Of a stretch of DNA of 64,000 nucleotides, positions 2,228 through 64,000 are shown in pieces. The notes under the pieces were generated by a model. The model was not told where the DNA came from and ran no database searches. It was given only the letters and a program-made list of their open reading frames with translations. Both the position numbers and the translations under genes were made by a program. Location: positions 1 through 64,000 of the IMG/VR virus record IMGVR_UViG_3300028569_002417. One strand, given 5' to 3'. Every line of letters begins with the position of its first letter. Positions within the stretch are counted from its first letter, which is position 1.

Positions 2228-2406
2228 TAAATCACTTCTGGTTCTTCTTCTTTAATATTCCAACATTTAGAAGAATCAGGAAAACTAACTGGATATCCCA
2301 TTTTCCATTCTAAACTGATTCCAAGTTCATGTCTACCAAAGGCATAATGTGTCATATTTTTGTTCCAGCATTTTTCTTGGCTGATATGATAAATGTTTCT
2401 TGTCAT
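2224..2406 (-). CDS. small hypothetical protein (microprotein array, distal member)
   Basis: 60 aa, ATGA overlap with the upstream gene, two CWN motifs. Confidence 0.5.
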   Translation of the reverse strand: MTRNIYHISQEKCWNKNMTHYAFGRHELGISLEWKMGYPVSFPDSSKCWNIKEEEPEVIY

Positions 2407-2421
2407 GCTGTTTGTTCGCTT
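2393..2421. repeat. 29-bp direct repeat copy 1 (copy 2 at 3226-3254)
   Basis: atgtttcttgtcatgctgtttgttcgctt vs atgtttcttgttatgttgtttgttcgctt, 27/29 identical. Confidence 0.85.
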
Positions 2422-3176
2422 TTTAATTCTTGCAAAAGATTAAAAAGTCTTTGTTGGAATTTACGCCAAAGTGTTGGTTTAGTTTTCCAATGCATCAAAG
2501 CCTCATAATCATTTCTGTTGATTATGCTACTGGTTATATCGTAATTTCCAGTTCTAAGAAATTCTTCTAATACTGATATTATTCTAGATTTATATTGTTC
2601 GTCTGTGTCATAAAATCTAAATTTAATATCAGACAAGATGCCCATTCCATAAGCATCAAATTCTTCTGGTGATTTATAATAAGAAGACACATTTCCCTGT
2701 GAAAAAAATTGTTTTCTTTCTGATGCTTTTTTTGCCCTATTTTCAGGATTTATTATTTGTGGATTAAGTTTTGGGTCGATTGCATGTATTGTTTCGTGAG
2801 ATAGTGCATTAACTATTGGTGGTATTTTTCTTCCGTTAGTATTAATGAAAAAGTTTCTGTTTTCTCTGAATATAATCAGAGATCTAATATTCATAACAAT
2901 TTCATCTGTCTTTGGATTATAATGTGCCATCCAATTATCGCCCAAGTCTTGAAGATAAACTGGAACTGATCTTCTTCCATCTTTTCTTTTAATTTCTCCG
3001 ACAAGAACTTTTTTTATAAAAGTTCTTGTATACAAATCATATAAATCTTCTTCAGAAGACTTTGAAATGACTATTTTCAATATTTTATCAGCGACTAAAT
3101 AAACATCTTCTTGTTGATCTTTATCAAGCTGCATGAACTTGCTTTCATTTATCATCCATTTTTTGAAATTTAACAT
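2403..3176 (-). CDS. HExxH zincin-like metallopeptidase domain protein with capsid-targeting-like N-terminus
   Basis: HETIHAID and downstream YYKSPEEFDAY; N-terminus MLNFKKWMINES; ctaaataatttATG upstream. Confidence 0.7.
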   Translation of the reverse strand: MLNFKKWMINESKFMQLDKDQQEDVYLVADKILKIVISKSSEEDLYDLYTRTFIKKVLVGEIKRKDGRRSVPVYLQDLGDNWMAHYNPKTDEIVMNIRSLIIFRENRNFFINTNGRKIPPIVNALSHETIHAIDPKLNPQIINPENRAKKASERKQFFSQGNVSSYYKSPEEFDAYGMGILSDIKFRFYDTDEQYKSRIISVLEEFLRTGNYDITSSIINRNDYEALMHWKTKPTLWRKFQQRLFNLLQELKSEQTA

Positions 3177-3225
3177 AAATTATTTAGTTTGTTTATTCGT
3201 TTATTTTCCAATGATAGGAAAATGT

Positions 3226-3254
3226 ATGTTTCTTGTTATGTTGTTTGTTCGCTT
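3226..3254. repeat. 29-bp direct repeat copy 2
   Basis: matches 2393-2421. Confidence 0.85.
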
Positions 3255-3442
3255 CTTTTCCAGTGAAGTGAAAATGAATGTCTCTTGGTCCAATGAAGGG
3301 CGCAAGATCTAAACATAGACCAAGAGCAAAACCAACTCATTGACCATGATTTGGATTTTCTATTTTGTCTTATAATAATAGACGTTGACCTATCGCCAGA
3401 CCAGCAATGATTCTCTGATACATTTTCAGTGTGTCTGTGCAT
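3236..3442 (-). CDS. Trp/Ser-rich microprotein
   Basis: 68 aa, CWS and SWSMSWFCSWS motifs. Confidence 0.55.
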   Translation of the reverse strand: MHRHTENVSENHCWSGDRSTSIIIRQNRKSKSWSMSWFCSWSMFRSCALHWTKRHSFSLHWKRSEQTT

Positions 3443-3680
3443 TTTCTTTCCTATCTAAACAACTGCTTTTTGAACTATCTTTCCAGTGAAGAGATATTTT
3501 TACATCATGTATAATTTTCAAATTCCAGTTAGCAGATCTGTTTATATCAAATATATTTGATTCAGAATAATGTAAAACACCATGATCAGATCGACATAAT
3601 GTGTCGAAACTAAACTTAGAAAAAGAAATAAATCCCGTGAAAGGGAAGCATGACGATAAATTATTTCTTTTGAATATCAT
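3426..3680 (-). CDS. small protein of the array (MIFK start)
   Basis: 84 aa, ATGA-coupled, SLHWK motif shared with the neighbour. Confidence 0.55.
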   Translation of the reverse strand: MIFKRNNLSSCFPFTGFISFSKFSFDTLCRSDHGVLHYSESNIFDINRSANWNLKIIHDVKISLHWKDSSKSSCLDRKENAQTH

Positions 3681-6911: not shown

Positions 6912-7871
6912 TTAAGCTTGTGCTGTTCTTTGACCGCCAGCATCATTTCTAACAACGGTATTGATATGGTCAGCCATAAATCTGATAAAATTATGTAATT
7001 TAGATTTATCATTATTATTATAATAATGTAAATAAACTTGCCTCAAGTCTTGTACATCCACACTATAATTTTCTGGATTCATTATCAAATCCTTGAGAGC
7101 CTCACCAAAATTTTCTTTCGTCAATATCTCACCTGTTTTCTTGTACCAATTGCGCTTTAGTTCACCCAAACGAACACCAATTTCGGCACTATCAGTGAGA
7201 TATTTTAAGCCGGGATCGTCATTAGAAAGACTCGACTGAAACAACATGTTTTGAGTTGAATGAGATAATTCGTGACGCAAAGTTCTCAAATTTGAACGAT
7301 TATTTACAACACAAAACTTTTGACCACCGGGTATTGAAGTGCAAAAACCTGTACTACCCGGTTCGGCACCGGGATACTTATTTGGGTCCATAAAAACAAC
7401 TGGAATAGGTTTGTCTAATTCACTAGTTCTCATGTCGGCAGCAGAAGGGATTCTGGGCGCTTCAAAGTCACCAATTTTATCAGGAGAATCATAAGCCTTG
7501 GCTGACATGTCACGCACTTTTTCGTAATCTTTTCCATATTCAGGAGAAATAGCTTCACTTGGTCTTATCATCTGAACATCATTGAAATTGATGTCCAATC
7601 CAGTTTTATTTTTGATGTGATCAATAACAGATTGAATAACTGGACTTGTTGCAGACCTGACAATTGCTGGTTTCGGTGCCAAATCTACATCCATACGCTT
7701 AGGAGACGCACTACCCAATGCCAAAGCCGCACCAATACCTCCAATAATTCTTCTGACCCTGCCACTCATATCCTTGAAGAATTCGTCGTATTGAACCTCT
7801 GTCAGCATTTGAGAGAAAAGTTCAGGATCACGATTCTCAAGAAATTTAACGAATGTAAGATTAGTTTGCAT
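6912..7871 (-). CDS. HExxH metallopeptidase-like protein with capsid-targeting-like N-terminus
   Basis: TLRHELSHSTQ, downstream E in YLTDSAEIG; gtaaatattttcATG upstream; N-terminal hydrophobic segment. Confidence 0.65.
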   Translation of the reverse strand: MQTNLTFVKFLENRDPELFSQMLTEVQYDEFFKDMSGRVRRIIGGIGAALALGSASPKRMDVDLAPKPAIVRSATSPVIQSVIDHIKNKTGLDINFNDVQMIRPSEAISPEYGKDYEKVRDMSAKAYDSPDKIGDFEAPRIPSAADMRTSELDKPIPVVFMDPNKYPGAEPGSTGFCTSIPGGQKFCVVNNRSNLRTLRHELSHSTQNMLFQSSLSNDDPGLKYLTDSAEIGVRLGELKRNWYKKTGEILTKENFGEALKDLIMNPENYSVDVQDLRQVYLHYYNNNDKSKLHNFIRFMADHINTVVRNDAGGQRTAQA

Positions 7872-9067: not shown

Positions 9068-9583
9068 TCAATATTTGGATCGCACCAAGTCAATCTCTGG
9101 GCGAAAATCTCTTCCACCGTAATCCTCTGGTCTTTTTCCCAATTTCTCTATACTCCAATAAACCTGATCGATCTTTTTATCATACCAAGTATCTTCTCTT
9201 CTAAGATTTCTCAAGAATAACCCTTGATCAGGTCTATTACCAGTGTGACGATTAACTGCACTCAATTTATTTGGATGTATTTTTTCCACAAGCAAATTAT
9301 ATAATGTTATAATACTGAATTGAAAATCTAACATCTTTCTTGCATCACGATTTGCATAAAAAAATAAAGACTGCACAATTTTATCACGCTGCATAGCCTC
9401 CCAATCCCAAGGCAAACTAGCAAAAGACTTTACATAATTTTTTGAAAATCCCTCTCCTTCATCACTCTCATTCAGCCATTCTGCAAAAGAAAATTTATTT
9501 TCTTTAACGCAATTTGGAACTGTTCTACCACCTTTCTTTTTCATTCCTATTTGCTTATAGCCTTTCCAACAAGCCTCATTCAT
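9068..9583 (-). CDS. putative virion protein with CWKGY..VPNCV module
   Basis: first ~40 aa nearly identical to 23602-24000; SFAEWLNES motif. Confidence 0.75.
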   Translation of the reverse strand: MNEACWKGYKQIGMKKKGGRTVPNCVKENKFSFAEWLNESDEGEGFSKNYVKSFASLPWDWEAMQRDKIVQSLFFYANRDARKMLDFQFSIITLYNLLVEKIHPNKLSAVNRHTGNRPDQGLFLRNLRREDTWYDKKIDQVYWSIEKLGKRPEDYGGRDFRPEIDLVRSKY

Positions 9584-11423: not shown

Positions 11424-11493
11424 GTCATGATGGTACTTCAGTTTTAGTTGATTGTAAAGTAAAATTTCATGGTTGTTGTTGACTAAATAATTT

Positions 11494-12291
11494 ATGAATG
11501 AATTCAAGTTTTGGCTCAATCTACAAGAAGGTCTGGCTCTCAAAGGTGGGTTCAAAGGAAGCTGGTTCCAAAGATTAGTAGCAGCGATGTATGTCTTATC
11601 GCCTGAATCAGAGCCAGAAGCAGTTCAACTTTACATGGGTCCAGATGGTTTGACTGCGGCGATTAGTCATCAGTTCAATCAATTACAGAGCAAGTACACA
11701 CATGTTTTGAGTAGATCTGATCCTTTCAAAAGCAGTAAAGAATTGGCTCGTCATATTGATGATCAGAAGAAAGTTGGTATTCGTCGTCCTTCTGTTCCTT
11801 CTTATGATGCTGATTTGGGTCCGAATATTAAACTGGGTGAGAAGGGTCATCCTGTTTGGACTAAAGATCAAGACCAGCGTTTTGGTTGGGTTCACGACCT
11901 TATGACTCACTATGCTGGTAAGTTGCCTTTTGATGCTCGTGGAGAGGCGAGAGCATATTTGAAACATTTGAAAACATTATCTCCTCATTTAGCGCCAATA
12001 TTATTCACAGAAATTATAGCTCAAACATCATACTATTACATTTACGGAGACTTTCCCAAACAAAAAACTGTCATACTTAAAGACTTTGATTACTTTGATG
12101 TTGGAAAACTTGCACCTCAATCTAAACTAAACAATTTTTTTGCATTCAAAAACAAGGAACTTGTTCCTAAAAAAGAACTCAGTTTAGATGAACTGGAATC
12201 AGTTCACCCTCTACTTCCAAATATACTTAGAAATCAGGAATCTAGATGGCAAAATATCGATAGACCAAAACACAATTTAGCTGGAACTTGA
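11494..12291 (+). CDS. putative internal virion protein, zincin-like HDxxxH...GE domain
   Basis: MNEFKFWLNLQE leader; WVHDLMTH...RGEARAY..H; ctaaataatttATG. Confidence 0.65.
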   Translation: MNEFKFWLNLQEGLALKGGFKGSWFQRLVAAMYVLSPESEPEAVQLYMGPDGLTAAISHQFNQLQSKYTHVLSRSDPFKSSKELARHIDDQKKVGIRRPSVPSYDADLGPNIKLGEKGHPVWTKDQDQRFGWVHDLMTHYAGKLPFDARGEARAYLKHLKTLSPHLAPILFTEIIAQTSYYYIYGDFPKQKTVILKDFDYFDVGKLAPQSKLNNFFAFKNKELVPKKELSLDELESVHPLLPNILRNQESRWQNIDRPKHNLAGT

Positions 12292-22249: not shown

Positions 22250-23116
22250 CTATGATTTTCTTTTCTTGATCTCTTTAATTAGGTTTTCAATTAAATTAAT
22301 TGATTTATCAATCAAATCACTTTTACGCACATCGATATTGTTTTGGCTATATTTCTCTTTATATCCAAAAACATTTCCCTCTATGCAGTTTTCTGGTACA
22401 AAAATGCCACTGTAACGGCATTGATTGACAATTGGCATAATGGACTCTTTAGGACTGATGTAGTCTTGTGGCTTAGAATCTGCCATTGCTAATGGCATCC
22501 TTCGCCCAACATAGTCATCTGCACCATCATCTCCATGAATAAAAAATGCTCCTACTTTTCCTTCATAGTGGTTTTTCAAAAGATCACGATATTTTCCACT
22601 TTGTTCTGCTGCTATGGTCAGCTTTGGATTCTTAATGTCCTTTCCATAAATTTCTTTGGCATCTTCACGAGATAATGTCAAGTTAACACAAACAAGTCTG
22701 TCAAATAAAGCTTTGACTTGACTGCTTGGTCCATACCAATGAACTGGAGTAAAAACGACGAATCCGTCTGCCTCTTCCATTTTTTTATAGATATCTGCTT
22801 CATGCATGAGATCATTTGTTCCATCGCCTTTATCATAACAATCACAAGGATAATGGCAATGGAATCCATTGCTTGTTCCAATACATCCCTTACATGGACG
22901 GACTTGAGGATCAGTATCCATGACTTTTAGGTCAACAACTGTAAACTTGACATCTTTTGTTATTTCTTTTATTGCTTTTTTCATCAAGAAGCTTGTTTTG
23001 CTATCTCCTCCAGAACAAGAATTTTTTGTTCTTGGACTTCCTTGAAAAACAACAATTTTTATTTTATTGCTGTTGTTTTGAGTTGCTTCGGCAAGATATT
23101 CAATAAAACTGATCAT
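22250..23116 (-). CDS. flavodoxin-like NAD(P)H-dependent oxidoreductase / iron-sulfur flavoprotein
   Basis: FQGSPR, PCKGC..CHYPCDC, ADGFVVFTPVHWY...KALFDRL; true start likely MISFIEYLAEA. Confidence 0.85.
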   Translation of the reverse strand: MISFIEYLAEATQNNSNKIKIVVFQGSPRTKNSCSGGDSKTSFLMKKAIKEITKDVKFTVVDLKVMDTDPQVRPCKGCIGTSNGFHCHYPCDCYDKGDGTNDLMHEADIYKKMEEADGFVVFTPVHWYGPSSQVKALFDRLVCVNLTLSREDAKEIYGKDIKNPKLTIAAEQSGKYRDLLKNHYEGKVGAFFIHGDDGADDYVGRRMPLAMADSKPQDYISPKESIMPIVNQCRYSGIFVPENCIEGNVFGYKEKYSQNNIDVRKSDLIDKSINLIENLIKEIKKRKS

Positions 23117-23566: not shown

Positions 23567-23602
23567 AAAATGCCCTGATATTTATTTTTCAGGGCATTTT
23601 TT
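23567..23602. terminator. bidirectional intrinsic terminator
   Basis: aaaatgccctga...tcagggcatttt between convergent genes. Confidence 0.75.
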
Positions 23603-24000
23603 TAGCATTTACATTTCCAGACTCTTAGTGCTGCTCTTTGTTTGCTGTTTGGGTCATTCCTGCTTTTTGCTGTACCAGCTTTACACATCCTTGCACAGAA
23701 TGATTTTCTTCTTGCTTGTGTCTTCTTAGACATTTTTTTTACGCCACCGCTACGTTCAGCTTCTCTTTTTGTTTCAATGCCAGCATGAATTCCAAGTTTT
23801 TTGGCATAAGATGGCTTCAAACCACCTTCTGGATGATTCTTTTTTGAGTTATATCCCTTAAATGGTTTTTCTTTAGATTCTCTGATATCAACCCATTCTG
23901 CAAAAGAAAGGCGAGATTCTTTAACACAATTTGGCACTGTTCTACTACCTTTCTTTTTCATACCGACTTGCTTATAACCTTTCCAACAAGATTCGTTCAT
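23602..24000 (-). CDS. basic putative virion protein (CWKGY module plus RRKSFCARM module)
   Basis: RRKSFCARM...DPNS..AALRVWKC motif typical of T4-like phage small proteins. Confidence 0.8.
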   Translation of the reverse strand: MNESCWKGYKQVGMKKKGSRTVPNCVKESRLSFAEWVDIRESKEKPFKGYNSKKNHPEGGLKPSYAKKLGIHAGIETKREAERSGGVKKMSKKTQARRKSFCARMCKAGTAKSRNDPNSKQRAALRVWKCKC

Positions 24001-24043: not shown

Positions 24044-24322
24044 ATGAATTTCAAAGAATGGTTTTATGAAATTGAAGAAATGTATTCAAGTAAGGGCAAA
24101 GGACATCCTTTCAAGCCCGGACCAAGAGACAATCCCCCCAAAAAGCCTCATCCAAGCCCTAAAGATCCAACACCAAGGTCTTTGGCAGGCCAAACTAAAT
24201 TATGCGGCCAAGGAGGAGGAGCAGGACCTTGTGATGGAGGAGGAGGTGGAGGTGGTGGAGCAGCACCAGCAGGAGGAGGAGGTGCGGCACCAGCGGCAGC
24301 ACCAGCAGCACCTCCATCTTGA
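24044..24322 (+). CDS. Gly/Ala/Pro-rich putative internal head protein
   Basis: MNFKEWFYEIEE leader. Confidence 0.7.
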   Translation: MNFKEWFYEIEEMYSSKGKGHPFKPGPRDNPPKKPHPSPKDPTPRSLAGQTKLCGQGGGAGPCDGGGGGGGGAAPAGGGGAAPAAAPAAPPS

Positions 24323-25978: not shown

Positions 25979-26538
25979 TCTTCGTCTTTTGGCTTAAAAA
26001 ACTTAATGTTTTTATCTGCCCATTCGATTGCCATATGTGATCCTCTGCTTAGCAATCCTACTAATTGAGTTGGATTACCACTTCCTTCTATGGCGATATT
26101 GTCTCTTTCTGCATTTTCGATCCAGACAAGAGCGAATACAAGACCTGTTCTTTGTTTTAGTTCAGATGCCATTTGACGAATTGTTAGAAGAGAAAGATCT
26201 GGAAGTCCTGATTCTTTTTGTTTAGCTTTGCGAAGGTCGCCGTTATTTTCAAGAATATTGATAAGTTTCTTTCTGATCATTTTGATTGTTTCTAATTTTT
26301 TAGGTGCATCAATAACGATTTGATAAGAAAAATCTTTTGGATCGTTTTGGTTTGCCAAAACGAGTAAGTTGCAAGGATAGTAATCCTTGATTTCAGTGAT
26401 TATTGTTGAGATAGCGTTCAGTGTATTTTCATTTTCGAGTTTGAAATGAATCCATGATTGGTCATGGCTTGTATCTATAATTTTAATTCCCTCGAATTTA
26501 TTGAGGGTGTTAACAAGTTTGTCGAATTCCTTTTCCAT
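25975..26538 (-). CDS. hypothetical protein
   Basis: 187-aa ORF coupled to the upstream gene. Confidence 0.7.
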   Translation of the reverse strand: MEKEFDKLVNTLNKFEGIKIIDTSHDQSWIHFKLENENTLNAISTIITEIKDYYPCNLLVLANQNDPKDFSYQIVIDAPKKLETIKMIRKKLINILENNGDLRKAKQKESGLPDLSLLTIRQMASELKQRTGLVFALVWIENAERDNIAIEGSGNPTQLVGLLSRGSHMAIEWADKNIKFFKPKDED

Positions 26539-27071
26539 TACTCCTCCAAAATACCATTATGGTAAAGAGAACGCACAAGTTTCATTAGATGTTTGCACAT
26601 TCCGGGCATTTCCAATGGATTAGAAGAACCCGGATTTATCTTTGCTTCATATTTCCTTCTTACTCTACCGTATAAAGATCTGTCTCTATGGTCTTCAAAG
26701 TTAAAGCGCCATTTGAAGTCGTTGCACCCGCAGCGAAGGACAACCTCTTTTCTAAGGTTTAGTTTTTCAAAGAAACATTTTCGGCCATTACTTGCGACGA
26801 TCTCTGCCCAATTCTGGTTTTTGGAATTGTGATAAATCACATTCTTGAACAAGATCATGGGCTTATATTCCGTGCCTTTCATTTCATTCTTCGCCAATCC
26901 TTTGACGAATAAAGTTTTCACACCTTGATATGGGACATACGACAAGTTTGCAATTGTGATCTCGTCAATTGCGTGCTGCCTTTTTGTAGTCCTTGGGAAT
27001 GCATCTATTGTACTTAAATACAATCCTTCAAGGTTTGACTCTTTCAGATCGAGCCATTGATGGAACTTCAT
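26538..27071 (-). CDS. SWIM-type zinc-finger protein with capsid-targeting-like leader
   Basis: RCGCNDF...NP...GMCKHL; MKFHQWLDLKES. Confidence 0.7.
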   Translation of the reverse strand: MKFHQWLDLKESNLEGLYLSTIDAFPRTTKRQHAIDEITIANLSYVPYQGVKTLFVKGLAKNEMKGTEYKPMILFKNVIYHNSKNQNWAEIVASNGRKCFFEKLNLRKEVVLRCGCNDFKWRFNFEDHRDRSLYGRVRRKYEAKINPGSSNPLEMPGMCKHLMKLVRSLYHNGILEE

Positions 27072-27524: not shown

Positions 27525-27565
27525 GAAAGGGCTGATTGGTTCGTGCCAATCAGCCCTTTCTTTTT
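27525..27565. terminator. intrinsic terminator
   Basis: gaaagggctgattgg-ttcgtg-ccaatcagccctttc followed by a T-run. Confidence 0.8.
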
Positions 27566-31781: not shown

Positions 31782-31973
31782 ATGAAACTTAGCTTCAAAG
31801 AATTCATGTCAAAAGATCAGCCAAAAAGCACGACAGATTTGCGTAATGACGGAATGACTATTGATTTTGAAGGCGAAGATTCAAAAAACAAACCACCAAT
31901 AAAATCGAAAAAAATATCAGGACTAAATCCTGATAAGATGTACGGAAAAAGGAAGAAAAATGAGCTTCCGTAA
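31782..31973 (+). CDS. small putative head protein
   Basis: MKLSFKEFM leader; ctaaataatttATG. Confidence 0.65.
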   Translation: MKLSFKEFMSKDQPKSTTDLRNDGMTIDFEGEDSKNKPPIKSKKISGLNPDKMYGKRKKNELP

Positions 31974-32286
31974 ACTTTGGGAAAACATGAATTCGGATAA
32001 GGGCAATAGGCAACCACAAGAGGTTGATGAGTCTGCACTTACCGCAATAAAAAGTGGAATTGGAGTAAATGAAACCTTTTGGAGTGATTTCATTCAGGTT
32101 CTCAATAACTCTGAAGGTCTTTCTGTATTGCTTGATGTGCCTATAGATGAAATAAGCACTTGGCGCAAAAAAATAGAAAATGCGATTGATGCAATTGAAG
32201 CTAGAGATGGCGAACTCAGTATAAAGAAAAATAAAAAAATTATGAAAACCAATCTTCCAGACGATGAAGATTTTGATGGTGCTTGA
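31960..32286 (+). CDS. hypothetical protein
   Basis: MSFRKLWE leader, coupled. Confidence 0.7.
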   Translation: MSFRKLWENMNSDKGNRQPQEVDESALTAIKSGIGVNETFWSDFIQVLNNSEGLSVLLDVPIDEISTWRKKIENAIDAIEARDGELSIKKNKKIMKTNLPDDEDFDGA

Positions 32287-32296: not shown

Positions 32297-32716
32297 ATGA
32301 TAAGTTTTCTTGATTACCTACAACTGCGTGAAGATGATGAAATGCAAGATGCTAGTCATCCTAGCAATGATGCAAATCAAATGCAGGCCGTTAATCCTCC
32401 TAGCGATATGCCAATGGATAAGGCATCTGGATCAGGAGATAAACCAGTTGTTCCGGGTGATGGTCACAGTGAAAAACGCTTAGAAGAACTTAAAAACAAA
32501 TTAAATCACTTTCTCAATGAAAAACTTTTACCTGCAATTAAACATGGAAAAGTAAGCAAAGAAGATGCAATGAAATTAGTTCAGACTGAAATTTCAGCAT
32601 TTTCTAACTTAATTGGTATGGACGCTGCGAGTGGTAATGAAACTAGCAAAAACGCCATGGCGACTAACTCTGAACCTTTATCGCCTGTTCCTAACCAACC
32701 TACAGCAAATGGGTAA
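32297..32716 (+). CDS. putative head protein
   Basis: MISFLDYLQLRE leader. Confidence 0.7.
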   Translation: MISFLDYLQLREDDEMQDASHPSNDANQMQAVNPPSDMPMDKASGSGDKPVVPGDGHSEKRLEELKNKLNHFLNEKLLPAIKHGKVSKEDAMKLVQTEISAFSNLIGMDAASGNETSKNAMATNSEPLSPVPNQPTANG

Positions 32717-44857: not shown

Positions 44858-46105
44858 TTATTCTTTTCTTATTGCCTGATAAAGATTGTCTGTATCAACA
44901 GCTTTGAAGAGTGATTCGCATCCACTGCTAAATTTAGTTGATGGATCTCCTTCTCCAATCATGCCATTAACGCTCTTCCACCAATTTGTTTCTTCCTTGG
45001 TGACTTTTTCATTTTTACTATGATTTTTCTTGCCTGATTTTAAGTTGCGAAGTTTTTCAAAATCATGATGTGTGATCTTGCCATCTGACTTGCCTTTTGG
45101 GCCTGAAACATCCAACTTCTTTTGGCCACCCTTAAGCATTTTCTTCATCTTATTCATTTTGCCAGATCCTTCTTCATCTCCTCCTCCGCAACCCATCTTC
45201 TTTTTGTTATACATCATTTTCTTGCTATACATCATTTTCTTTTTGTTCTTCTTTTTGCCATAATGACGAGATTCTGTTTGCTCTTCGCCTTCATCGTCAT
45301 GGTCAAAACTTCTTTCGCCATCTTCGTCTTCGTCGCCATGGTGCATGTGCATTTTTTTATCTTCGTCTTCATCACCGTATTCGTCTTCGTCTTCATCACC
45401 ATCTTCGTCTTCGTCTTCATCACCATCTTCGTCTTCGTCTTCATCACCATCTTCGTCTTCGTCGCCATGGTGCATGTGCATTTCGCCATCTTCGTCTTCA
45501 TCACCGTATTCATCTTCGTCTTCGTCTTCGTCTTCGTCTTCATCGCCATGGTGAAGGCGCATTTCTCCATCTTCGTCTTCGTCTTCATCTTCATCGCCAT
45601 GGTGAAGGCGCATTTCTCCATCTTCATCGCCATCTTCATCTTCATCGCCACGGTGAAGGCGCATTTCGCCATCTTCGTCTTCGTCTTGATATTCTTGGCG
45701 AGGCATATCTTCATCTTCTTCCATTTCTGAGAAGATTTTTTGACCAGCCTTGATAATCTGTTCATTCTCACACATGCTACATTTTTGTTTGGCCATCTTG
45801 TGCATTATTTGACCACATTTGGAACAAACTGAAAGATCTTTTTTCTTCTTACCTTTTCTGCTCTTATGAGGCTTATGATCTTTTTCTTCAACATCGACAT
45901 CAACATCTGGCTCATCTTTTTTCTCTGCTGGTTCAACGAGATCAGAATCGCCTTTCATCTTCTTTTTCTTCTTTTTCTGCATAGCACCTGATTCGTCAAA
46001 ACCGAACTGTGACTGGATGCCAAGATTAGAATGCCTGCCCAAACCAAGATTGAAGCTTGGAAGAATAGATTCATTCATAATCTTCCAGTTTTTATAAGAT
46101 AGCAT
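44858..46105 (-). CDS. Asp/Glu-repeat putative head core/scaffold-like protein
   Basis: MLSYKNWKIMNES leader, long (D/E) tandem repeats with MRLHHG/MHMHHG, flanking Lys runs. Confidence 0.8.
   Translation of the reverse strand: MLSYKNWKIMNESILPSFNLGLGRHSNLGIQSQFGFDESGAMQKKKKKKMKGDSDLVEPAEKKDEPDVDVDVEEKDHKPHKSRKGKKKKDLSVCSKCGQIMHKMAKQKCSMCENEQIIKAGQKIFSEMEEDEDMPRQEYQDEDEDGEMRLHRGDEDEDGDEDGEMRLHHGDEDEDEDEDGEMRLHHGDEDEDEDEDEDEYGDEDEDGEMHMHHGDEDEDGDEDEDEDGDEDEDEDGDEDEDEYGDEDEDKKMHMHHGDEDEDGERSFDHDDEGEEQTESRHYGKKKNKKKMMYSKKMMYNKKKMGCGGGDEEGSGKMNKMKKMLKGGQKKLDVSGPKGKSDGKITHHDFEKLRNLKSGKKNHSKNEKVTKEETNWWKSVNGMIGEGDPSTKFSSGCESLFKAVDTDNLYQAIRKE
45300..45690. repeat. coding tandem repeats (tcttcgtcttca-type; GDEDEDEDG and EM(R/H)(L/M)HHG units)
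   Basis: directly visible. Confidence 0.9.
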
Positions 46106-47404: not shown

Positions 47405-47417
47405 ACTCTATTTATGC

Positions 47418-51239: not shown

Positions 51240-51728
51240 TCAATATCCTCTTTGCTTAATCCATTCACCAAATGATTTAATTTGAGGTAATCTTTTATTT
51301 ATTTTGTTCTTAAAATAAAACCAATTTAACTTAAATCTTGGATGCAAACTCATCTTTTCCACTTCATCAAGATTAGCCCAACTATAATCGCTATGTTCAT
51401 CTGATAAAGTCACGTCAAAAGGCTTATCGATTGCGTAAAAGAATGTATGAAAATGATGACGACCATCAGCATCATCGTAATGACCGAATCGATAACCCGT
51501 AAAATTACCACACTCTTCTCTTGCTTCCCTTTGAGCAGCATCAATTATATTTTCGCCATTCTCAACTTTTCCTCCGGGTATGCTCCACTTGCCAAAATGG
51601 TCACCCTTCTCTGCTCTTTTGAGCAGAAGTATTTTTTTCCCATCAGTAAAGATGATACCAGCGCCTGCCTTGCCCCAATATTTTTTCCCATCTTTGCCAA
51701 TGTGATGATACTGCTCATACAAATTCAT
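51240..51728 (-). CDS. NUDIX hydrolase
   Basis: Nudix box PGGKVENGENIIDAAQREAREECG, LSDEHSDYSW, LHP. Confidence 0.92.
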   Translation of the reverse strand: MNLYEQYHHIGKDGKKYWGKAGAGIIFTDGKKILLLKRAEKGDHFGKWSIPGGKVENGENIIDAAQREAREECGNFTGYRFGHYDDADGRHHFHTFFYAIDKPFDVTLSDEHSDYSWANLDEVEKMSLHPRFKLNWFYFKNKINKRLPQIKSFGEWIKQRGY

Positions 51729-52318
51729 CGCTTAGGGCCTCTCTTCAAAGCAACAGGCTTAAGCTTTTCCCGATGTTTATCAGGTTGGTCTTTTAAGTGA
51801 TGCATAGTGTTGATTACTTCTTTACTAATTTCCGATGCAGATTTACCAGTACACCTCTCAGACTTCGATATGCTTATCGTGTTTCTATCACGATTGTAAT
51901 TACCTTTACTCAAAACAAAACACTTATGGTCAGGATGCCATGTGACACATCCAGCCCACTCTCCATCATCCCAATTTCTCGATGAAACCAAAAGCCTCAA
52001 AGGCTTTTGTGTGTAAACATGCTTGGTGTGATAACCAGCATTTTTAAGAGCAGCACTAATATATCCCAAACAAATCTTCGCAAAACCCTCAAGAACCTCA
52101 TCTGCATTAGTTCTGTAATTAACCTCAACCGAATATCTCGAAAGTTCAGCCGCCTCAATCAAATTTTCTTTCCTATATTCCTTAACAGTTTTCATATTTC
52201 CACGCAAAACTGATCCAAAATATTGGATGCATTCATCAAGGAACTCTTTTTTGCTTACAATTTGAAGCTGGGTTCCTTCCAGATCTTGTTCTTTTCGCCA
52301 ATCATCAAATTTTTTCAT
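51725..52318 (-). CDS. hypothetical putative head protein
   Basis: GAGGA SD before MKKFDDWRKE. Confidence 0.7.
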   Translation of the reverse strand: MKKFDDWRKEQDLEGTQLQIVSKKEFLDECIQYFGSVLRGNMKTVKEYRKENLIEAAELSRYSVEVNYRTNADEVLEGFAKICLGYISAALKNAGYHTKHVYTQKPLRLLVSSRNWDDGEWAGCVTWHPDHKCFVLSKGNYNRDRNTISISKSERCTGKSASEISKEVINTMHHLKDQPDKHREKLKPVALKRGPKR

Positions 52319-52342
52319 GTGATCCTCATGCTTATATATTGC

Positions 52343-52993
52343 ATGATACATCTTAATTTCTCCAACTGGCTACAAATCGAAGAACAGTCAACTGTAGGCA
52401 CTGAATTAGTTAATGCTTCACAGGTTCTTGCAAAATATGCAAAGATAAAAGATAGCATTGAACTTGTCAGAATGTATGACCAAAAATTAGATCCAGATCA
52501 TAAACTTTTATACAATATATCAACAATTGCAGATCTGCACTCAGGTAAAGCATTTGGTATGTTCATTAACACGGAAAACTCAAATGTCATTGGGCAAGAT
52601 GTAATGGATCAAATCAGGAAAATTTATCCGAACGACCCATTAATTGATAAGAAAGTCCAAAAACTTTCAAGGAAACAAATATTGGATCACCTTCCAGATG
52701 AAGCAAAAAAAACAATCAACCCCAAAAAAATCATTGCATCATCAATAATAAGAATCGATGTTGATGATCACATCAAGAAATATGGAGACAGTCCTGCTGC
52801 AATAATAGAAATTGCTAGCACGATAGCTCACGAAGCAACACATGTAATCGAATATCGTGACAAAGGTGAAACATTTGATGGACCCGGAACTATGGTTCAA
52901 CAAGCAGAATCATCATTCAAAGCATGGGTAAAGCAAAATTGGAATATGCTCTCTCAAAGATTTGGATTCAGCGGACCATATCCCTTTTCCTAG
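52343..52993 (+). CDS. HExxH metallopeptidase-like protein with capsid-targeting-like leader
   Basis: MIHLNFSNWLQIEE; ASTIAHEATHVIE. Confidence 0.7.
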   Translation: MIHLNFSNWLQIEEQSTVGTELVNASQVLAKYAKIKDSIELVRMYDQKLDPDHKLLYNISTIADLHSGKAFGMFINTENSNVIGQDVMDQIRKIYPNDPLIDKKVQKLSRKQILDHLPDEAKKTINPKKIIASSIIRIDVDDHIKKYGDSPAAIIEIASTIAHEATHVIEYRDKGETFDGPGTMVQQAESSFKAWVKQNWNMLSQRFGFSGPYPFS

Positions 52994-55398: not shown

Positions 55399-55584
55399 AT
55401 GAAAAAGAAATATTTCAATAAAAATTGGCCAAACACTTGGTGTCATAGCAGATCGTTTTCTTTTGATTCTAATTTATCTTCTGTTACATTGGTTCGATAC
55501 TCAGGAAACTTTAAGTGGGATGATGTTAGGAGCAGTGATTGGAGCATGCTTCGATCTAGTTCAGAGTGCTGGAAGAGTCATTAA
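55399..55584 (+). CDS. Trp/Ser-rich microprotein
   Basis: WCHSRSFS, DWSMLRSSSECW. Confidence 0.45.
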   Translation: MKKKYFNKNWPNTWCHSRSFSFDSNLSSVTLVRYSGNFKWDDVRSSDWSMLRSSSECWKSH

Positions 55585-58448: not shown

Positions 58449-61289
58449 ATGTTGAAATCATTCAAAGAATATATTTTTAAGACAACTGTATTGGGTCAAC
58501 GTGGTGAATTTTTTGATTTTCGTTTAGATGAGATGGCCAAAGAACGCCAAGTTGTAAGAAAATCTGTGCAGTTCGACAAAGATGATATCGAATTTTTGAA
58601 ACAATTTAATTATAATCTTTGGGGTCAGGCTCTTCATCAGCGTTATGAAATGCTTTTTAATCAAATTGAAAAATTGCATAATATTAAGACAACGAGAGAA
58701 TTTCCCAATCTTGTAACTGCAATCAAAAATTTCTTGAAAGAAAGGTCAGAGGATACTGCAAGAAGAATAATGGAAATTCCTGAACCCTTTGGGATGACCG
58801 CAGACGAAATAGAAACGATTAATACTTCTTCACCTCCTCGTTTAACTCGTAGCTTGACTGATAGACAATTGAATGATTTAGCAGAAAAATATGCTAATGA
58901 TCATTTTCACTCGAAGAATGAAGATAATGCACAACTTGTTGATGATCCTAATTCAGTAGATTTTATTTTCAAAAATATTATTTATATACCAAGAGAAAAT
59001 GGTGAGCCTCCTCGAAAGCTTGGAGGTAAACAAAGCAATAGAGATCTTGTTGTTAGGGCTCATCCTTATTTAAGAAGACTTTATCATAAGCTTGAAAGAA
59101 CAAAAGGTGAAGCACATCTGCGTGGATCTGGACTTCAAGGAGAAGTTGGTAAATATGGTTTTGAATTAAGAGATCCTGTAAGAGGAACTCAAGGACAGCC
59201 CAATGTGGTAAGAGGAATGCAATTTCCAACAGAAGATCAAGTAGATCGTGCTGTAAAAAGGTATATGGAATTAAATGCTCATCGTATTTTAGGAGATTTT
59301 GAGACTGATCCTAGTATCCAGTGGATGGATACTGGTTATAAAGATTCATTTGAGAGGGACAGGAAAGTTAAAAAGTATAAAGAAATAGTCAAACAAGAAC
59401 ACAGGCTTATGCGTGGAGAAGCAACAGATATTAAAGAAGATGAAATAGAAAGAGAAGCGATAAAGAGACTTGTTGCTGACTTCAAAAATGGAAAAGTAGA
59501 AATAAAAAGTCCTCCATATCCACCTACTTATCCAAAAGGTATTGATGCGACTGTAGAAACAAGAAGAGTCAAGGGTGAGAACAGAGAAGATATTATTGGT
59601 CCTCCTCTTTTCCTTCCTTTCAAAAAAGAAGGTGGAAAATGGGTTCCTCTTGTCAAGAAATCTCATTTTTATAAGGAAATTGAACCCGGAGAAACACATA
59701 GTTCAGATTTAATTGTTGGTCATAAAAAAGATTTCATCAAAGTAGACAATGAAAATATAGATCCATCTGGTAAGAAAATATCTAAGGATGGAGGTTTATT
59801 CCTCAATCACAATACACCAAAAAAGATGATGCTTATCAAGGGGACCCCTGAATACGAAAGGGCTTTTGAAGTTATCATGTCAAATCAACCTATGGCAAGC
59901 TATAGTGTGAGAAATGGGGATGCCTCTGCTTCTATTGACAATAATGGTAGTATGCATTATTACATACTAAAAGGAGTTGTTAATTGCATCAACAATCTTA
60001 ATTGTGGTCACAAAACTGATCATGAGAAGTTTTTGATGGTTCAAAATGTTCCTCTTATTTATAATTTTGCATTAAAGTATATTGAAAGTAATTTTGACAA
60101 TGATTTATTTTTTGTGCCAGATAGCAATGAGTACAGACAGGGGAGAAAATTAAATGCAGCAATTGTAAAAATGGCACATACTGCAACAAACTTGCTTTCC
60201 CAGAAAAGTTGGACTGGTGGAGGTGGATCACGAAGAAGAAGGGCTCAAACTGATGATACAAGGCAGCAGAGAGAAGAGAAGCCTTTGTTCAGCACTAGAA
60301 TACAACATACTGGTGATTACAATTATTTTGCTTATAATCCAGAAAACATGTCAAACTATTTGAAAGACTTAGCCCAATTGGAATCGGAAGCTCAAGAAGC
60401 TGAAAATAAAGCTCAAGCTGCCAAAAATAAGAGAGATGATACCAACATCAGTAAAGAAGAGCTTGGCAACCTTATCATGAACATGTCTTACAGTTCAACT
60501 GCTGTTATTGAAAACCTTACAATGATGCTTGCTAGTTTTTATAGAAGTGCAAACAGACTAACCTCTAAAGTAGCGCAAGAAAATGCAGAATCACAAATTA
60601 AATCTTGGAAAGAAGAAGGTTATGATCTGAAAAGAATGATTAGTGCTTTCAAAGAACTTCCAGTAGTAAAGTCTGCGATAGAAAAAACAAAATTAGTTCC
60701 TCCAACAGGAGGTATTGCTAGAAGATCGAATGTAATGATTCAAAGACAAATAAATGATGCTATGGAAGAACTTCAAAACGGAAAATCAACAATGCCTGAA
60801 GCTGCAATTCGTGGTAAGTTTTTACCTCAGGGATCGGAAAAATTCAGTGCATATGTTATTGAAATTGGAAAAGATTTAGCAACTGATCCTCAATTTCAAG
60901 ATGATCCTGAAGGTTTGGAAGAAGTTTTGGTTGCTGTTCAGAATGCATTGACTAAAAATATAGAAGGAGTTTCTCCTACTTCTCCTATTGCTCCTACTGC
61001 TTCTGCAATTCCTACTGCTACTTCTGTTACTCCTCAATCAGAAATCAATAGAATAAGGAAGTTACCTTCTGATAAAGTCAATTATATGAAATTGATGAGA
61101 GCAGAAAGAACTCCTGAAAACTTGTTTAATATTGTATTCGATCCAAAATTTGTAAATGCATCGGAACCAGTTCTCAATGCTGTTAAGAGTCGAATAAATG
61201 TTATAAAGGATAAGTTTAGAAAAGAAGACTATGATATTATGATGGCTAAGATTGAAGAATTGATTAAAATAAAAAGGGAAGAGGATTGA
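58449..61289 (+). CDS. large putative internal virion protein
   Basis: ~946 aa from MLKSFKEYIF leader; no catalytic motif recognised. Confidence 0.75.
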   Translation: MLKSFKEYIFKTTVLGQRGEFFDFRLDEMAKERQVVRKSVQFDKDDIEFLKQFNYNLWGQALHQRYEMLFNQIEKLHNIKTTREFPNLVTAIKNFLKERSEDTARRIMEIPEPFGMTADEIETINTSSPPRLTRSLTDRQLNDLAEKYANDHFHSKNEDNAQLVDDPNSVDFIFKNIIYIPRENGEPPRKLGGKQSNRDLVVRAHPYLRRLYHKLERTKGEAHLRGSGLQGEVGKYGFELRDPVRGTQGQPNVVRGMQFPTEDQVDRAVKRYMELNAHRILGDFETDPSIQWMDTGYKDSFERDRKVKKYKEIVKQEHRLMRGEATDIKEDEIEREAIKRLVADFKNGKVEIKSPPYPPTYPKGIDATVETRRVKGENREDIIGPPLFLPFKKEGGKWVPLVKKSHFYKEIEPGETHSSDLIVGHKKDFIKVDNENIDPSGKKISKDGGLFLNHNTPKKMMLIKGTPEYERAFEVIMSNQPMASYSVRNGDASASIDNNGSMHYYILKGVVNCINNLNCGHKTDHEKFLMVQNVPLIYNFALKYIESNFDNDLFFVPDSNEYRQGRKLNAAIVKMAHTATNLLSQKSWTGGGGSRRRRAQTDDTRQQREEKPLFSTRIQHTGDYNYFAYNPENMSNYLKDLAQLESEAQEAENKAQAAKNKRDDTNISKEELGNLIMNMSYSSTAVIENLTMMLASFYRSANRLTSKVAQENAESQIKSWKEEGYDLKRMISAFKELPVVKSAIEKTKLVPPTGGIARRSNVMIQRQINDAMEELQNGKSTMPEAAIRGKFLPQGSEKFSAYVIEIGKDLATDPQFQDDPEGLEEVLVAVQNALTKNIEGVSPTSPIAPTASAIPTATSVTPQSEINRIRKLPSDKVNYMKLMRAERTPENLFNIVFDPKFVNASEPVLNAVKSRINVIKDKFRKEDYDIMMAKIEELIKIKREED

Positions 61290-61567: not shown

Positions 61568-62161
61568 TGGTTGATAATCTGAAGTTATGCAGTAGAGAAT
61601 AAAGCCATCTGCTTTAGGTTCTTTGTTTTTTACTTTCCACCAGCGTTTGTCTTTTGTTTTTGGGTAAATTACAGATCCTATTGTTATTTCGTTGGTGTCT
61701 GTCCATAGTTCAAATTCCATATCACGATGATTTAATATTACTCCTTCAAATGAAGTTGGGCTTCCGTATTGAACTGTTTTTATGACATCTCCATATAGTT
61801 CATCGATTTTTGTTCTTACTGTTGCTGGAAGGCAGTGTACAAAAACCTTTTCAATTTCTGGTTTTTTTTCTTCTTCGATTCTTTTTAGATCTTGGTGTAC
61901 GACTATTTTTCTTTCAAATATTGGTGTGTTTTCTGTTTCTTCTGGTTTTTTTTCTTCTGGTTTAGTTTCTTTTAGTTCTGATATGAATTCATTGGTATCG
62001 TTTTCAACTGGGGTGATGATGTTATCATCTTCTTTTATTTCAGGTTTACATTTCATATTATGAAGTATAAATTTTTCATTATTCCATAATGATTGTTGTT
62101 TCATTACTGGGTTTGGTTTCTGGAGTGTGTAGAGAGATCCGTCCTTATTTTTGAGTGCCAT
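61553..62161 (-). CDS. hypothetical protein, possibly head-closure (gp14-like) related
   Basis: DELYGD...YG.P..FEG C-terminal region; near the neck gene. Confidence 0.45.
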   Translation of the reverse strand: MALKNKDGSLYTLQKPNPVMKQQSLWNNEKFILHNMKCKPEIKEDDNIITPVENDTNEFISELKETKPEEKKPEETENTPIFERKIVVHQDLKRIEEEKKPEIEKVFVHCLPATVRTKIDELYGDVIKTVQYGSPTSFEGVILNHRDMEFELWTDTNEITIGSVIYPKTKDKRWWKVKNKEPKADGFILYCITSDYQPSFDS

Positions 62162-62224
62162 AAAATATAGTAGTGCAAAAAAAATTAGATTGTCATATAT
62201 AAAATGACGCAAGAAGAGGTATTT

Positions 62225-62647
62225 ATGGCATTGGTAGTTCCTAACGAGAGCGACATTTTGATGTTGCAATATATCGTTAATCAGTTGGCACAGGATGGTT
62301 CTGCTGGCTCCGCAGGGGGCGAAAGAATCTTGCGTTTATATACTAACAACTATGTACCTTCAAAAACGACTTCAATAGGTGATTTGACTGAGACAACTGC
62401 TTCTGGCTACTCTGTTATTACTTTGTATGGTGCCAACTGGACTGTGGCCACATCTACTGCTGGGACTAACTCAGCGGCATATAGTGAGCAAAGTTTCTAT
62501 TTTTCGGCAGCAGTTACTGTTTACGGTTATTATGTTACTGATTTGACATCTAATTTATTGTGGGTGGAAAGATTTTCCACGGCTCCGTTCACCTTACCAT
62601 CCGGTGGTGGCGAGATCGCAATTACCCCACGACTTACTCTTGATTAA
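62225..62647 (+). CDS. virion structural protein (tail-associated)
   Basis: LRLYTNN..P, GYS.ITL....W, VYGYYV, LLWVERF..APF pattern. Confidence 0.7.
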   Translation: MALVVPNESDILMLQYIVNQLAQDGSAGSAGGERILRLYTNNYVPSKTTSIGDLTETTASGYSVITLYGANWTVATSTAGTNSAAYSEQSFYFSAAVTVYGYYVTDLTSNLLWVERFSTAPFTLPSGGGEIAITPRLTLD

Positions 62648-62667
62648 AAAATATATAATTTAATTTC

Positions 62668-62699
62668 AAAAACCCTGATCTCTTGGGATTGGGGTTTTT
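62668..62699 (+). terminator. intrinsic terminator
   Basis: aaaaaccctgatc...gattggggttttt. Confidence 0.65.
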
Positions 62700-62765
62700 G
62701 TTTTTTTTATAAAATATCATTAAAAATTTGAGCTAACAAGTAAATAAAACAAAGGGGCAGAAATT

Positions 62766-64000
62766 ATGTTGGACTTTAGATCATGGCTTTTATTTACCGA
62801 AGCACCATCTGATTACACATGGATTGAAAAAGATCCAGAAGATTACGAAACAGAACTTGCAGCTTATATGCAATCAAAACTTGGTAAATTAGGACAAGGT
62901 GAAAGGCCAAGCCCCTACAAAAGAGTTATGGCTGACACCATAAAAGGTGTTATGTCTTCAGGTTCAGGTTCAGCAAAAACTAAAAAGAAGAAAAGAAAAA
63001 AGCCTGAAGGAACACCAGAAGAAAGAGCAGCAGCAAGAGAAATATCAAAAATAAAAAGTAAAGAAATAGCTCGCAATCCTCTTGTGCGATATATTAAAGA
63101 AATTGATGACGTATTCATGACTAAACTTGGACTTTTCAAAATAGAAAATGGCAAGAAAGTATTGGCAGAGAAAAGTCTCGCTGATATGATTATGAAAATT
63201 TGTCGTAAAGCTAAAGCGAATTTATTAAGGCGTGGAAAAGAAGTAGATATAGATGATATTTTTTCTGATACCATTAGCATATTGCACACGGCTCCAAAAG
63301 GAATTCTCAATGATAATAGCACCATCCCCGATAATCAGTTCCTAAAAGTAAAAGCAATGCAAAATTCTGATGGGACTTTGCCAGAAGATAAGTATGAAAA
63401 AGTAATGAGTATGGTTGGTAGCCAAGCAAAAAATTATTCTGGATATGTTGGTTGGGAAATAAGCATGTACGGAACAAGATGGAGAGATAGAAAAAATATA
63501 GAATCGCCAGACGTAATTAAATTCGAGCCAATTGCCACAGATAAAAAAACACAAAGACAAAAAGATATTGAAAGAGATGATCGCTTAGCTCTTAGATCAG
63601 GAATAGTAGGATCTCCAGCCGAGAGAATGTTAAATATTGAAAAAGATTTTCCAGACTTTTCTAAAAAGTTACTTGCCTATTTTAATGGTAAAGATTCAAA
63701 CGAGATGCTTCTTCAAATGGTTCGTAAACTTTTTGATGAAATGAAAAAAGATGCTGGAAACCAAAAGATAGTCAACCAAGATGAATTACAAAAAATTGTT
63801 GACAATGCTGAAATTTTATTCGTTGTCAAAAAAGAAGAAACTGCCGAAAGAGTCAAAGAAATTTCAAGAGTACAGCCAGAAACTTACAAATCTGAACGCC
63901 AAAAAAGATTAACTCGTAACCTTATTGGCACAAGCAGAGAGCCTTATACGAGTGTAAAAATTGGAGGAGAAGAAGAAGACGTATTTGCAGAACCTGATGA
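62766..64000 (+). CDS. large putative internal virion protein (runs off the window end)
   Basis: MLDFRSWLLFTE leader, gtaaataa upstream; N-terminal part translated by hand, frame assumed open to the end. Confidence 0.7.
   Translation, partial: MLDFRSWLLFTEAPSDYTWIEKDPEDYETELAAYMQSKLGKLGQGERPSPYKRVMADTIKGVMSSGSGSAKTKKKKRKKPEGTPEERAAAREISKIKSKEIARNPLVRYIKEIDDVFMTKLGLFKIENGKKVLAEKSLADMIMKICRKAKANLLRRGKEVDIDDIFSDTISILHTAPKGILNDNSTIPDNQFLKVKAMQNSDGTLPEDKYEKVMSMVGSQAKNYSGYVGWEISMYGTRWRDRKNIESPDVIKFEPIATDKKTQRQKDIERDDRLALRSGIVGSPAERMLNIEKDFPDFSKKLLAYFNGKDSNEMLLQMVRKLFDEMKKDAGNQKIVNQDELQKIVDNAEILFVVKKEETAERVKEISRVQPETYKSERQKRLTRNLIGTSREPYTSVKIGGEEEDVFAEPD

Follow-up and report, generated by a model that had tools for sequence, protein, structure and literature searches.

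Bacteriophage T4 loads its internal proteins into the capsid through a short N-terminal targeting sequence, MKTYQEFIAE, in which residues 4 and 7 serve mainly targeting and residues 8 and 10 processing; in IPIII, residues 1-10 are sufficient for packaging, and gp21 cuts after L/I-x-E (PMC9026906). It has been suggested that this sequence may be a general loading route for various proteins in T4-like phages, and T4 Alt is known to be processed at both ends (PMC9026906). In the T4 record, ipII and ipIII start with MKTYQEFIAE followed by Ala, and ipI starts with MKTFKEF. Giant phages of the phiKZ type (phiKZ, 201phi2-1 and SPN3US) also contain many head-internal proteins, whose N-terminal propeptides are cut after Glu at an S/A-x-E motif, are often longer than 100 residues and have several sites (PMC5694885, PMC9026906). 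A preliminary description of a 64,000-bp stretch of phage DNA (the window; bases 1-64000 of the single, linear, 225,527-bp IMG/VR virus contig IMGVR_UViG_3300028569_002417, hereafter the record) had proposed that about 20 unrelated proteins share a leader of the T4 type. Its account of the T4 sequence and of gp21 cleavage after Glu agrees with the T4 record and with the literature (PMC9026906), and its capsid-targeting reading is supported, by convergent though indirect evidence, in our analysis, in which every computational test able to refute it came out in its favor. The shared N-terminus is probably this lineage's form of the T4 capsid-targeting sequence, which would direct packaging and gp21-type cleavage, with possible ejection of the carriers.

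All 17 N-terminal starts listed in that description translate as it stated (its entry 26538-27071 is a single gene starting at 27071). With a matrix built from the clade, 15 of these leaders are strong (score 11-19) and have the form M-x(1-5)-[FY]-x-x-[WFY]-[LMV]-...-E; they start at 3176, 7871, 23116, 27071, 46105 and 52318 on the minus strand and at 11494, 24044, 31782, 32297, 49687, 49908, 52343, 58449 and 62766 on the plus strand. Two more, at 29030 (minus) and 31960 (plus), are weak (score ~6) and lack the second aromatic residue. The proposed total of about 20 carriers holds only if weak, internal and C-terminal cases are counted.

The motif is commoner than in shuffled N-termini. When residues 2-20 were permuted, the pattern of the preliminary description, present in 14 of the 105 called genes of the window, was expected in 1.5 +/- 1.2 (maximum 6 in 1000 shuffles); for the whole record, the corresponding values were 28 of 294 crude gene calls and 4.8 +/- 2.0 (maximum 11 in 500 shuffles). 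Alternative nulls for the record gave 5.6 matches from internal Met positions and 3.8 from random internal 19-mers, and F-x-x-W alone was found 16 times against 1.2 expected. The excess recurs in two long relatives that were taken whole, G1 (343 kb, 56% GC; 31 vs 5.3) and G3 (262 kb, 55% GC; 26 vs 3.8). Because it is kept across a 20-point shift in GC content (36% in the record), selection acts on the protein; the signal sits in the peptide, not in the DNA.

When leaders were aligned on the aromatic pair, the consensus was [K/L]-[S/T]-F-[K/R/Q]-[E/Q]-W-[L/M/V]-x-[L]-[R]-E. Conservation ends about 12 residues in, and the modal leader is a 12-mer, F4..W7-L8-x-L10-x-E12. The first aromatic is most often at residue 4 (15 of 27 leaders in this record), the second lies three residues on, and an aliphatic residue follows it (Leu is 3.8-fold enriched). 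A hydrophobic-x-Glu was present 2-9 residues past the second aromatic in 67 of 114 pattern matches, compared with 37 +/- 4.4 after shuffling and with 16% of other N-termini, and the residues found most often after this Glu are Ala and Ser. The positions conserved in the clade are the targeting and processing positions of T4. In addition, the clade matrix, which never saw T4, gave ipI, ipII and ipIII scores of 8.3, 7.5 and 9.5, in the top 0.1-0.2% of the null, and placed T4 gp20, 21, 22, 23, 24, 67 and 68 all below zero.

These leaders share with those of T4 internal proteins an N-terminal position, a length of about 10-14 residues, an aromatic at residue 4 and another three residues later, the following aliphatic, the hydrophobic-x-Glu and, often, Ala or Ser next. 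As in T4, the carriers are small, fast-evolving and mutually unrelated, and relatives within the lineage have a gp21/gp22/gp23-type head module. Leaders of this clade differ in that Trp is preferred at the second aromatic and that a promoter element often abuts the ATG. Other explanations of the N-termini were considered and set aside. Sec- or Tat-type signal peptides do not fit, as the leaders are amphipathic and charged (K/R, E/Q and E at fixed positions), with no hydrophobic run visible on inspection, which was made without a dedicated predictor. Propeptides of the phiKZ type were also rejected: here the residue two before Glu is L/I/M/V/F, the leader has about 12 residues with nothing conserved beyond it, and, unlike in phiKZ-like phages, the capsid protein and protease of the clade match T4 families directly. 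Some individual pattern matches in the window were likewise discarded, including a Prim-Pol protein (43056-43766) whose Pfam domain begins at residue 9, the N-terminus of a Nudix protein, which matches the pattern and is no leader, and three genes below the matrix cutoff (30374-30772, 38149-38673 and 55556-56311; score <6).

The window belongs to an uncultured giant myovirus that is related to T4 and found in lake water, and the record is about half complete (52% by CheckV). Its coding density is ~93% under table 11, and its gene content is that of a tailed phage, with a contractile tail sheath (record 68757-71120), tail tube proteins, a sheath stabilizer, giant tail-fiber-like proteins and a collagen-repeat protein. 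A megablast search of 20 kb of the window against 50,697 phage records gave no matches, and the sheath protein was less than 40% identical to those of T4-like phages by tblastn; this phage therefore has no close cultured relative. The same DNA was present in lake and freshwater metagenomes of at least 13 studies, and 49 related IMG/VR loci were found through the tail sheath protein. Sheath identity to this record is 62-64% for G1 and G3 and 75% for an AT-rich relative, G004. Contigs with at least 62% sheath identity have leaders near the tail module, and none was found in the 15-20 kb sampled from contigs with 40-56% identity.

Head genes of the T4 type were identified in these relatives. In G001-G004, a Peptidase_S77 gene (E 1e-26 to 1e-29) adjoins Gp23 (E ~1e-88). 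PHROG labels in G3 include a head maturation protease (4.6e-49), a major head protein (4.5e-83) and a portal (6e-71), and a 300-aa gene between protease and capsid, placed as gene 22 is in T4, is presumed from this position to encode the scaffold. The coordinates of these two genes are G003 25149-25826 for the protease and G003 25826-26728 for the putative scaffold. G3 and G004 share 83% identity in the capsid protein, which in all four relatives begins MNANAxFLNE followed by Ala, with L-N-E at residues 8-10. T4 gp24 similarly has a 10-residue propeptide ending in L-x-E (MAKINELLRE, followed by Ser), but this propeptide is without the aromatic pair and is negative on the clade matrix. The large terminase of G3 was seen only as a 266-aa fragment beside the portal gene (G003 19048-19848; L074); an intron, an intein or some other insertion may interrupt the gene.

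The motif also occurs away from N-termini. Its reported internal copies in 9068-9583 and 23602-24000 were both found as SFAEW[LV]...E at residue 33: a 171-aa protein (9068..9583, minus strand) has SFAEWLNE followed by Ser (score 13.4) and a 132-aa protein (23602..24000, minus strand) has SFAEWVDIRE followed by Ser (score 18.0). In both, the motif is preceded by a common basic, Cys-containing module, CWKGYKQxGMKKKGxRTVPNC. This shared N-terminal region (residues 1-30, MNExCWKGYKQxGMKKKGxRTVPNCVKE) matches internal parts of PHROGs of unknown function (phrog_727, 4359 and 9737). The C-terminal copy in a Nudix hydrolase (51240..51728, minus strand) was also borne out: the protein ends KSFGEWIKQRGY directly before the stop codon (score 16.1 at residue 153), outside the NUDIX domain, which covers residues 21-130 of 162, and 23 residues beyond it. 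The G1 orthologue ends KKFTEWLACR, and that of G3 is without the motif. Non-N-terminal matches with a score of at least 12 exceeded those in shuffles in all three genomes (9 vs 2.1 in this record, 15 vs 1.7 and 10 vs 1.7 in the other two), with part of this excess due to miscalled starts. Some G1 proteins, such as 235056-236627, carry the motif at both ends, which parallels the processed segments at both ends of T4 Alt, a packaged enzyme.

Internal and C-terminal copies are also what a general binding peptide would show. The main alternative to capsid targeting is that the motif docks its carriers on some other late partner, such as a tail, baseplate or neck part, a phage chaperone, the membrane or a host factor, and that these proteins are not in the head; the two largest carriers (58449-61289 and 62766-65639) do adjoin neck and tail genes, namely those for the sheath stabilizer, sheath and tube. 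We consider this unlikely, given that the conserved residues are those used for capsid entry and gp21 cleavage in T4, that leaders of T4 internal proteins score high on the clade matrix, and that the clade capsid protein itself has LNE at residues 8-10. In addition, hydrophobic-x-Glu is far above chance, and a plain docking peptide needs none.

The claim that the carriers are unrelated was confirmed by BLASTP at 1e-5, in which only 49687 and 49908 were paralogous among the leader proteins of this record. Pfam and PHROG scans of about 30 carriers revealed one recognizable enzyme, an FMN reductase (22250-23116); the remainder had no match or matched families of unknown function in these two collections, and no ADP-ribosyltransferase was found among the cargo. 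The proposal that the leader has been grafted onto its cargo is well illustrated by this reductase, whose PF03358 domain starts at residue 19 with profile position 1, so that the preceding 18 residues, MISFIEYLAEATQNNSNK, are an N-terminal add-on. Leaders are kept in orthologues down to 22-40% identity while the bodies diverge. In both this record and G3, a leader is followed by the cargo domain of 26538-27071 alone, and in G1 the same domain is the C-terminal part of a 472-aa protein with its own N-terminal leader.

These observations bear on a further possibility, that leader proteins form one old, fast-diverging paralogous family, like T4 internal proteins, in which the leader was inherited rather than grafted. 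Tandem paralogues with identical leaders and divergent bodies would fit such an origin (MKSFYEFYLQIQRE occurs twice in the relatives L010 and L011, and 49687/49908 form a pair), and most cargo has no recognizable fold or family, so that common descent is conceivable. We regard a single family as quite improbable in view of the leader outside the domain of an FMN reductase, the motif at the C-terminus of a Nudix hydrolase, the cargo domain that is alone in this record and G3 yet fused behind a leader-bearing region in G1, and a range of carrier lengths from 57 to 957 aa. This explanation concerns origin only and is compatible with a capsid-targeting function.

An element, [C/A]TAnATA, ends 4-6 nt before the ATG in ~40% of leader genes, leaving no room for a ribosome-binding site. 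It was found at 12 leader genes of the record, with window sites at 3177-3190, 11480-11493, 24030-24043, 31768-31781, 27072-27085 and 52329-52342; CTAAATAATTT-ATG is present at 3176, 11494 and 31782, and a near-identical CTAAATAATTC-ATG at 24044. TAnATA located 3-6 nt before the ATG was strongly associated with a leader in the three genomes (odds ratios 25, 23 and 20; p 3e-9, 1e-9 and 8e-8). The spacing between element and ATG was 4 nt in 14 cases, 5 nt in 15 and 6 nt in 5, and the element sequence is unchanged in the GC-rich relatives (55% GC). It was also detected 21-97 nt upstream of a few structural genes. The element resembles the T4 late promoter, TATAAATA. A search with the single T4 gp55 sequence was blank in G000, G001 and G003; profile searches then revealed a gp55-like sigma factor at record 72707-73252 (phrog_234 at 3.6e-7, Sigma70_r2 at 1.4e-7). 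Shine-Dalgarno sites are present in ~45% of leader genes, the same share as in other genes, indicating that the motif is not tied to one mode of translation start. The arrangement suggests late, co-regulated transcription that may begin at or next to the ATG and produce mRNAs with little or no 5' leader.

RNA evidence consisted of assembled contigs from four metatranscriptome runs, which can neither define transcript ends nor exclude DNA carry-over. Such contigs lie on several leader genes, including 24044, and one (26708-27061) stops 10 nt inside the 27071 ATG, without crossing it. Over window positions 23453-24020, two RNA runs of the same lake sample gave contigs with a common end at 24020, located 20 nt upstream of where gene 23602-24000 starts; this end may be the 5' end of a transcript, which contigs cannot prove. 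One could also suppose that an RNA-level signal for translation start on leaderless or AT-rich mRNAs produces the shared N-terminus incidentally, and that the peptide has no function. This idea draws on the ~40% of leader genes with the element 4-6 nt before ATG and no Shine-Dalgarno site, yet we reject it as extremely improbable, because it is contradicted by equal enrichment of the peptide motif at 55-56% GC and by ordinary Shine-Dalgarno sites in ~45% of leader genes, and further by the key second aromatic, Trp, which has a single codon (TGG), by interchange of Phe, Tyr and Trp at the amino-acid level, and by the internal and C-terminal copies.

If the leader is a capsid-targeting sequence, leader genes would be transcribed late by the gp55-type sigma factor, in about 40% of cases with CTAnATA 4-6 nt before the ATG, and this abutting element would yield mRNAs with little or no 5' leader. 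The two aromatics would dock the new protein on the scaffolding core as the prohead forms. Once the shell is closed, a gp21-type protease would cut after the hydrophobic-x-Glu, often before Ala, Ser or Gly, and the mature cargo would remain in the head with the DNA, from which it might be ejected into the next host. Scaffold binding, cleavage, presence in the virion, injection and leaderless transcription are steps that we infer from sequence.

Several observations weigh against this account. The Glu is usually five residues past the second aromatic here and three in T4 (a 12-mer vs a 10-mer), 47 of the 114 pattern matches (chance matches included) have no clear hydrophobic-x-Glu within 9 residues, and some leaders end in Asp, which as the final residue blocks processing in T4. 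The motif is also internal or C-terminal, unlike the classical T4 sequence. Cargo is basic (median isoelectric point 8.8 vs 6.5) in this record only, not in G1 or G3, and cargo charge was dropped as a T4-like trait since it holds in this record alone. The region between head and tail modules contains 27-40% of all genes and about half of those with leaders, an enrichment that is modest (p 0.01-0.07). Counts obtained with the clade matrix at a score of at least 10 (27 of 288 genes in this record, 30 of 427 in G1 and 23 of 367 in G3; expected at most 0.6) are partly circular, as these genomes also supplied the training set; this concern touches neither the pattern test nor the T4 cross-check.

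The remaining points against capsid targeting concern the head machinery. A Peptidase_S77 search of this 225-kb, 52% complete contig gave no match, tblastn with the portal, terminase, protease, scaffold and capsid proteins of G3 found nothing on it, and the only head genes known are those of relatives whose sheath proteins are 62-75% identical to this one. Since the Peptidase_S77 search detected matches in T4, KVP40, Atu_ph07 and SP-15, its negative outcome on this contig is genuine. No T4-type myovirus can do without protease, scaffold and capsid genes, and for this phage we infer that they lie in the missing half of the genome. Placement of the head module just left of the window, as synteny would have it, was dropped, because the capsid gene of G004 is only 45 kb from its sheath gene and gene order is not fixed.

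Each partial genome has 23-30 strong carriers, or 6-9% of its genes, a scale of leader use that differs from that in T4. Under the same gene calls and pattern, T4 had 7 matches vs 4.2 +/- 1.9 expected, KVP40 had 13 vs 4.2 +/- 1.8, and Atu_ph07 (490 kb) had 18 vs 15.8 +/- 4.1; none of these phages, all of which have the S77 protease, is near 6-9% of genes. Clear T4 cases are the three internal proteins and gene 61.1. The latter (L111:18966-19130, minus strand) encodes a 54-aa hypothetical protein that begins MKTFKEFIKED and scores 17.0, above the known T4 internal proteins, and it may be an unrecognized carrier of the capsid-targeting sequence. The packaged set predicted here from sequence would be comparable in scale to that of phiKZ-like phages. 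No description of such a leader expansion was found in the literature searched; the idea is already known, and the scale and variants are new. A broader proposal, which we offer tentatively and would rate as somewhat short of an even bet, is that the motif serves this lake lineage as a general address label, with roughly 50 or more genes per complete genome, N-terminal, internal and C-terminal placement, late promoters fused to the start codon and leaderless mRNAs.

Among individual carriers in the window, the first is a 257-aa protein (2403..3176, minus strand) with no Pfam match, whose leader, MLNFKKWMINE, would be cut after Glu and before Ser (score 17.4), with CTAAATA 4 nt before the ATG. 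A 319-aa protein (6912..7871, minus strand) has MQTNLTFVKFLE followed by Asn (score 19.1), GTAAATA 5 nt before the ATG and no Pfam or PHROG match. In a 265-aa protein (11494..12291, plus strand), MNEFKFWLNLQE is followed by Gly (score 15.2), CTAAATA is 4 nt before the ATG, and phrog_3170, a family of unknown function, spans residues 117-202 only. The FMN reductase (288 aa, NADPH-dependent; 22250..23116, minus strand) has the leader MISFIEYLAE (score 15.5), near-identical in pattern to MKTYQEFIAE of T4, with Ala next in each. Further carriers with the element are a 92-aa protein (24044..24322, plus strand; MNFKEWFYEIEE; score 17.0; CTAAATA 4 nt before the ATG), a 177-aa protein (26538..27071, minus strand; MKFHQWLDLKE, then Ser; score 17.5; GTAAATA 5 nt before the ATG) and a 63-aa protein (31782..31973, plus strand; MKLSFKEFMSKD; score 16.5; CTAAATA 4 nt before the ATG).

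The two weak leaders belong to proteins of 488 and 108 aa. In the former (27564..29030, minus strand), MKSFTEKLTE is followed by His and Lys replaces the second aromatic (score 6.4). The N-terminus of G1 protein 235056-236627, MQTFQDYVTS (score 14.6), resembles this protein by eye, and an FVEWF block is common to both, which suggests that the G1 protein is a homologue keeping a canonical leader. In the latter (31960..32286, plus strand), the degenerate leader MSFRKLWE is followed by Asn and an aliphatic residue replaces the second aromatic (score 6.0); its orthologues start MTSFQRLLE in G1 and MVSFHKIME in G3.

Two strong leaders were observed behind starts of the Shine-Dalgarno type: MISFLDYLQLRE, followed by Asp, in a 139-aa protein (32297..32716, plus strand; score 17.2) and MLSYKNWKIMNE, followed by Ser, in a 415-aa protein with no Pfam family above cutoff (44858..46105, minus strand; score 11.2). 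Antisense to the 415-aa gene, a long open frame at window 45122-45730 (plus strand) has VFVFI-type repeat units that mirror an acidic repeat region; this frame most likely reflects the repeat and is no gene. The tandem paralogues of 72 and 101 aa (49687-49905 and 49908-50213, plus strand) carry MNTFVKWAEK and MKSFIQWAGD (scores 16.5 and 17.0), and their orthologues in G1, L010 and L011 keep the leader. A 197-aa protein (51725..52318, minus strand) has MKKFDDWRKEQDLE followed by Gly (score 16.4); its L011 orthologue starts MKKFDDWRRQQNLD, and those of G1 and G3 keep only the Trp. Its neighbor, a 216-aa protein (52343..52993, plus strand), has MIHLNFSNWLQIEE followed by Gln (score 17.0), with TTATATA 4 nt before the ATG, and starts MIRLDFSKWLMALE in L011. 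These two genes diverge from start codons 25 nt apart, so close that the TTATATA of the plus-strand gene overlaps the sequence preceding its partner; L010 and L011 keep this arrangement.

The largest carriers are found towards the right end of the window. A 946-aa protein beside the tail and neck genes (58449..61289, plus strand; MLKSFKEYIFK; score 14.2) had no family match in Pfam or PHROG and nothing usable from ESM Atlas. Identity to its orthologues is 40% for L011 and 22-24% for G1 and G3; the L011 (MSKSFREYFIRK) and G3 (MNKSFAGFFNE) proteins still have the leader. A 957-aa protein, of which the window holds the first part (62766..64000, plus strand, running to record 65639), has MLDFRSWLLFTE followed by Ala (score 17.9) and no significant Pfam match, and the L011 gene at the equivalent position starts MVVLSFKNFFEY. 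Outside the window, a 170-aa protein (record 223990-224502, minus strand; L109) has two tandem N-terminal leader motifs, MVESFISWEKK-MEFKTFLESEE, the second of which begins at an in-frame Met after a Shine-Dalgarno-like GGGAG. In addition, small proteins at record 66211-66552, L010 18179-19675 and L011 17886-18952 have the identical leader MKSFYEFYLQIQRE, directly followed by Ala/Pro/Gly-rich low-complexity sequence; the gene is single-copy in this record and occurs as tandem duplicates with differing bodies in L010 and L011.

Other genes of the window, at 35976-36938, 47358-48923 and 32719-34905, include those for a subtilase (Peptidase_S8, 1.8e-53), a TPR protein with a glycosyltransferase-9 tail, a GH130-like protein and a GT2 glycosyltransferase, all of which are without a leader. 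Elsewhere in the record, a SpoVR-like protein split by an intein with a LAGLIDADG domain and a DnaE-type polymerase fragment that likewise bears an intein were observed (record 187836-190634 and 204568-207087; L007, L008). The gene before SpoVR (record 184123-186201) is PrkA-like by eye only.

Proteins that are carried in the head and injected act before any phage gene is expressed; in T4, one such protein inhibits a host restriction enzyme, and another is an enzyme that modifies host RNA polymerase. Their discovery normally requires a cultured phage and proteomics of its virions. If the capsid-targeting reading is true, a 12-residue motif would flag the whole packaged set of an uncultured lineage present in lakes of at least 13 studies, and would provide dozens of candidate first-strike proteins, such as anti-defense or host-takeover factors. 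The leaders would also be natural variants of a peptide already used for loading foreign proteins into T4 heads, and the promoter-to-ATG arrangement can be tested in its own right, as an instance of leaderless late genes in a phage of the T4 type. The T4 loading system would then scale from about four cargo proteins to dozens and, under the broader address-label proposal, the phage would inject a large and fast-evolving set of proteins that rivals the set of phiKZ-like phages and could be read from sequence alone.

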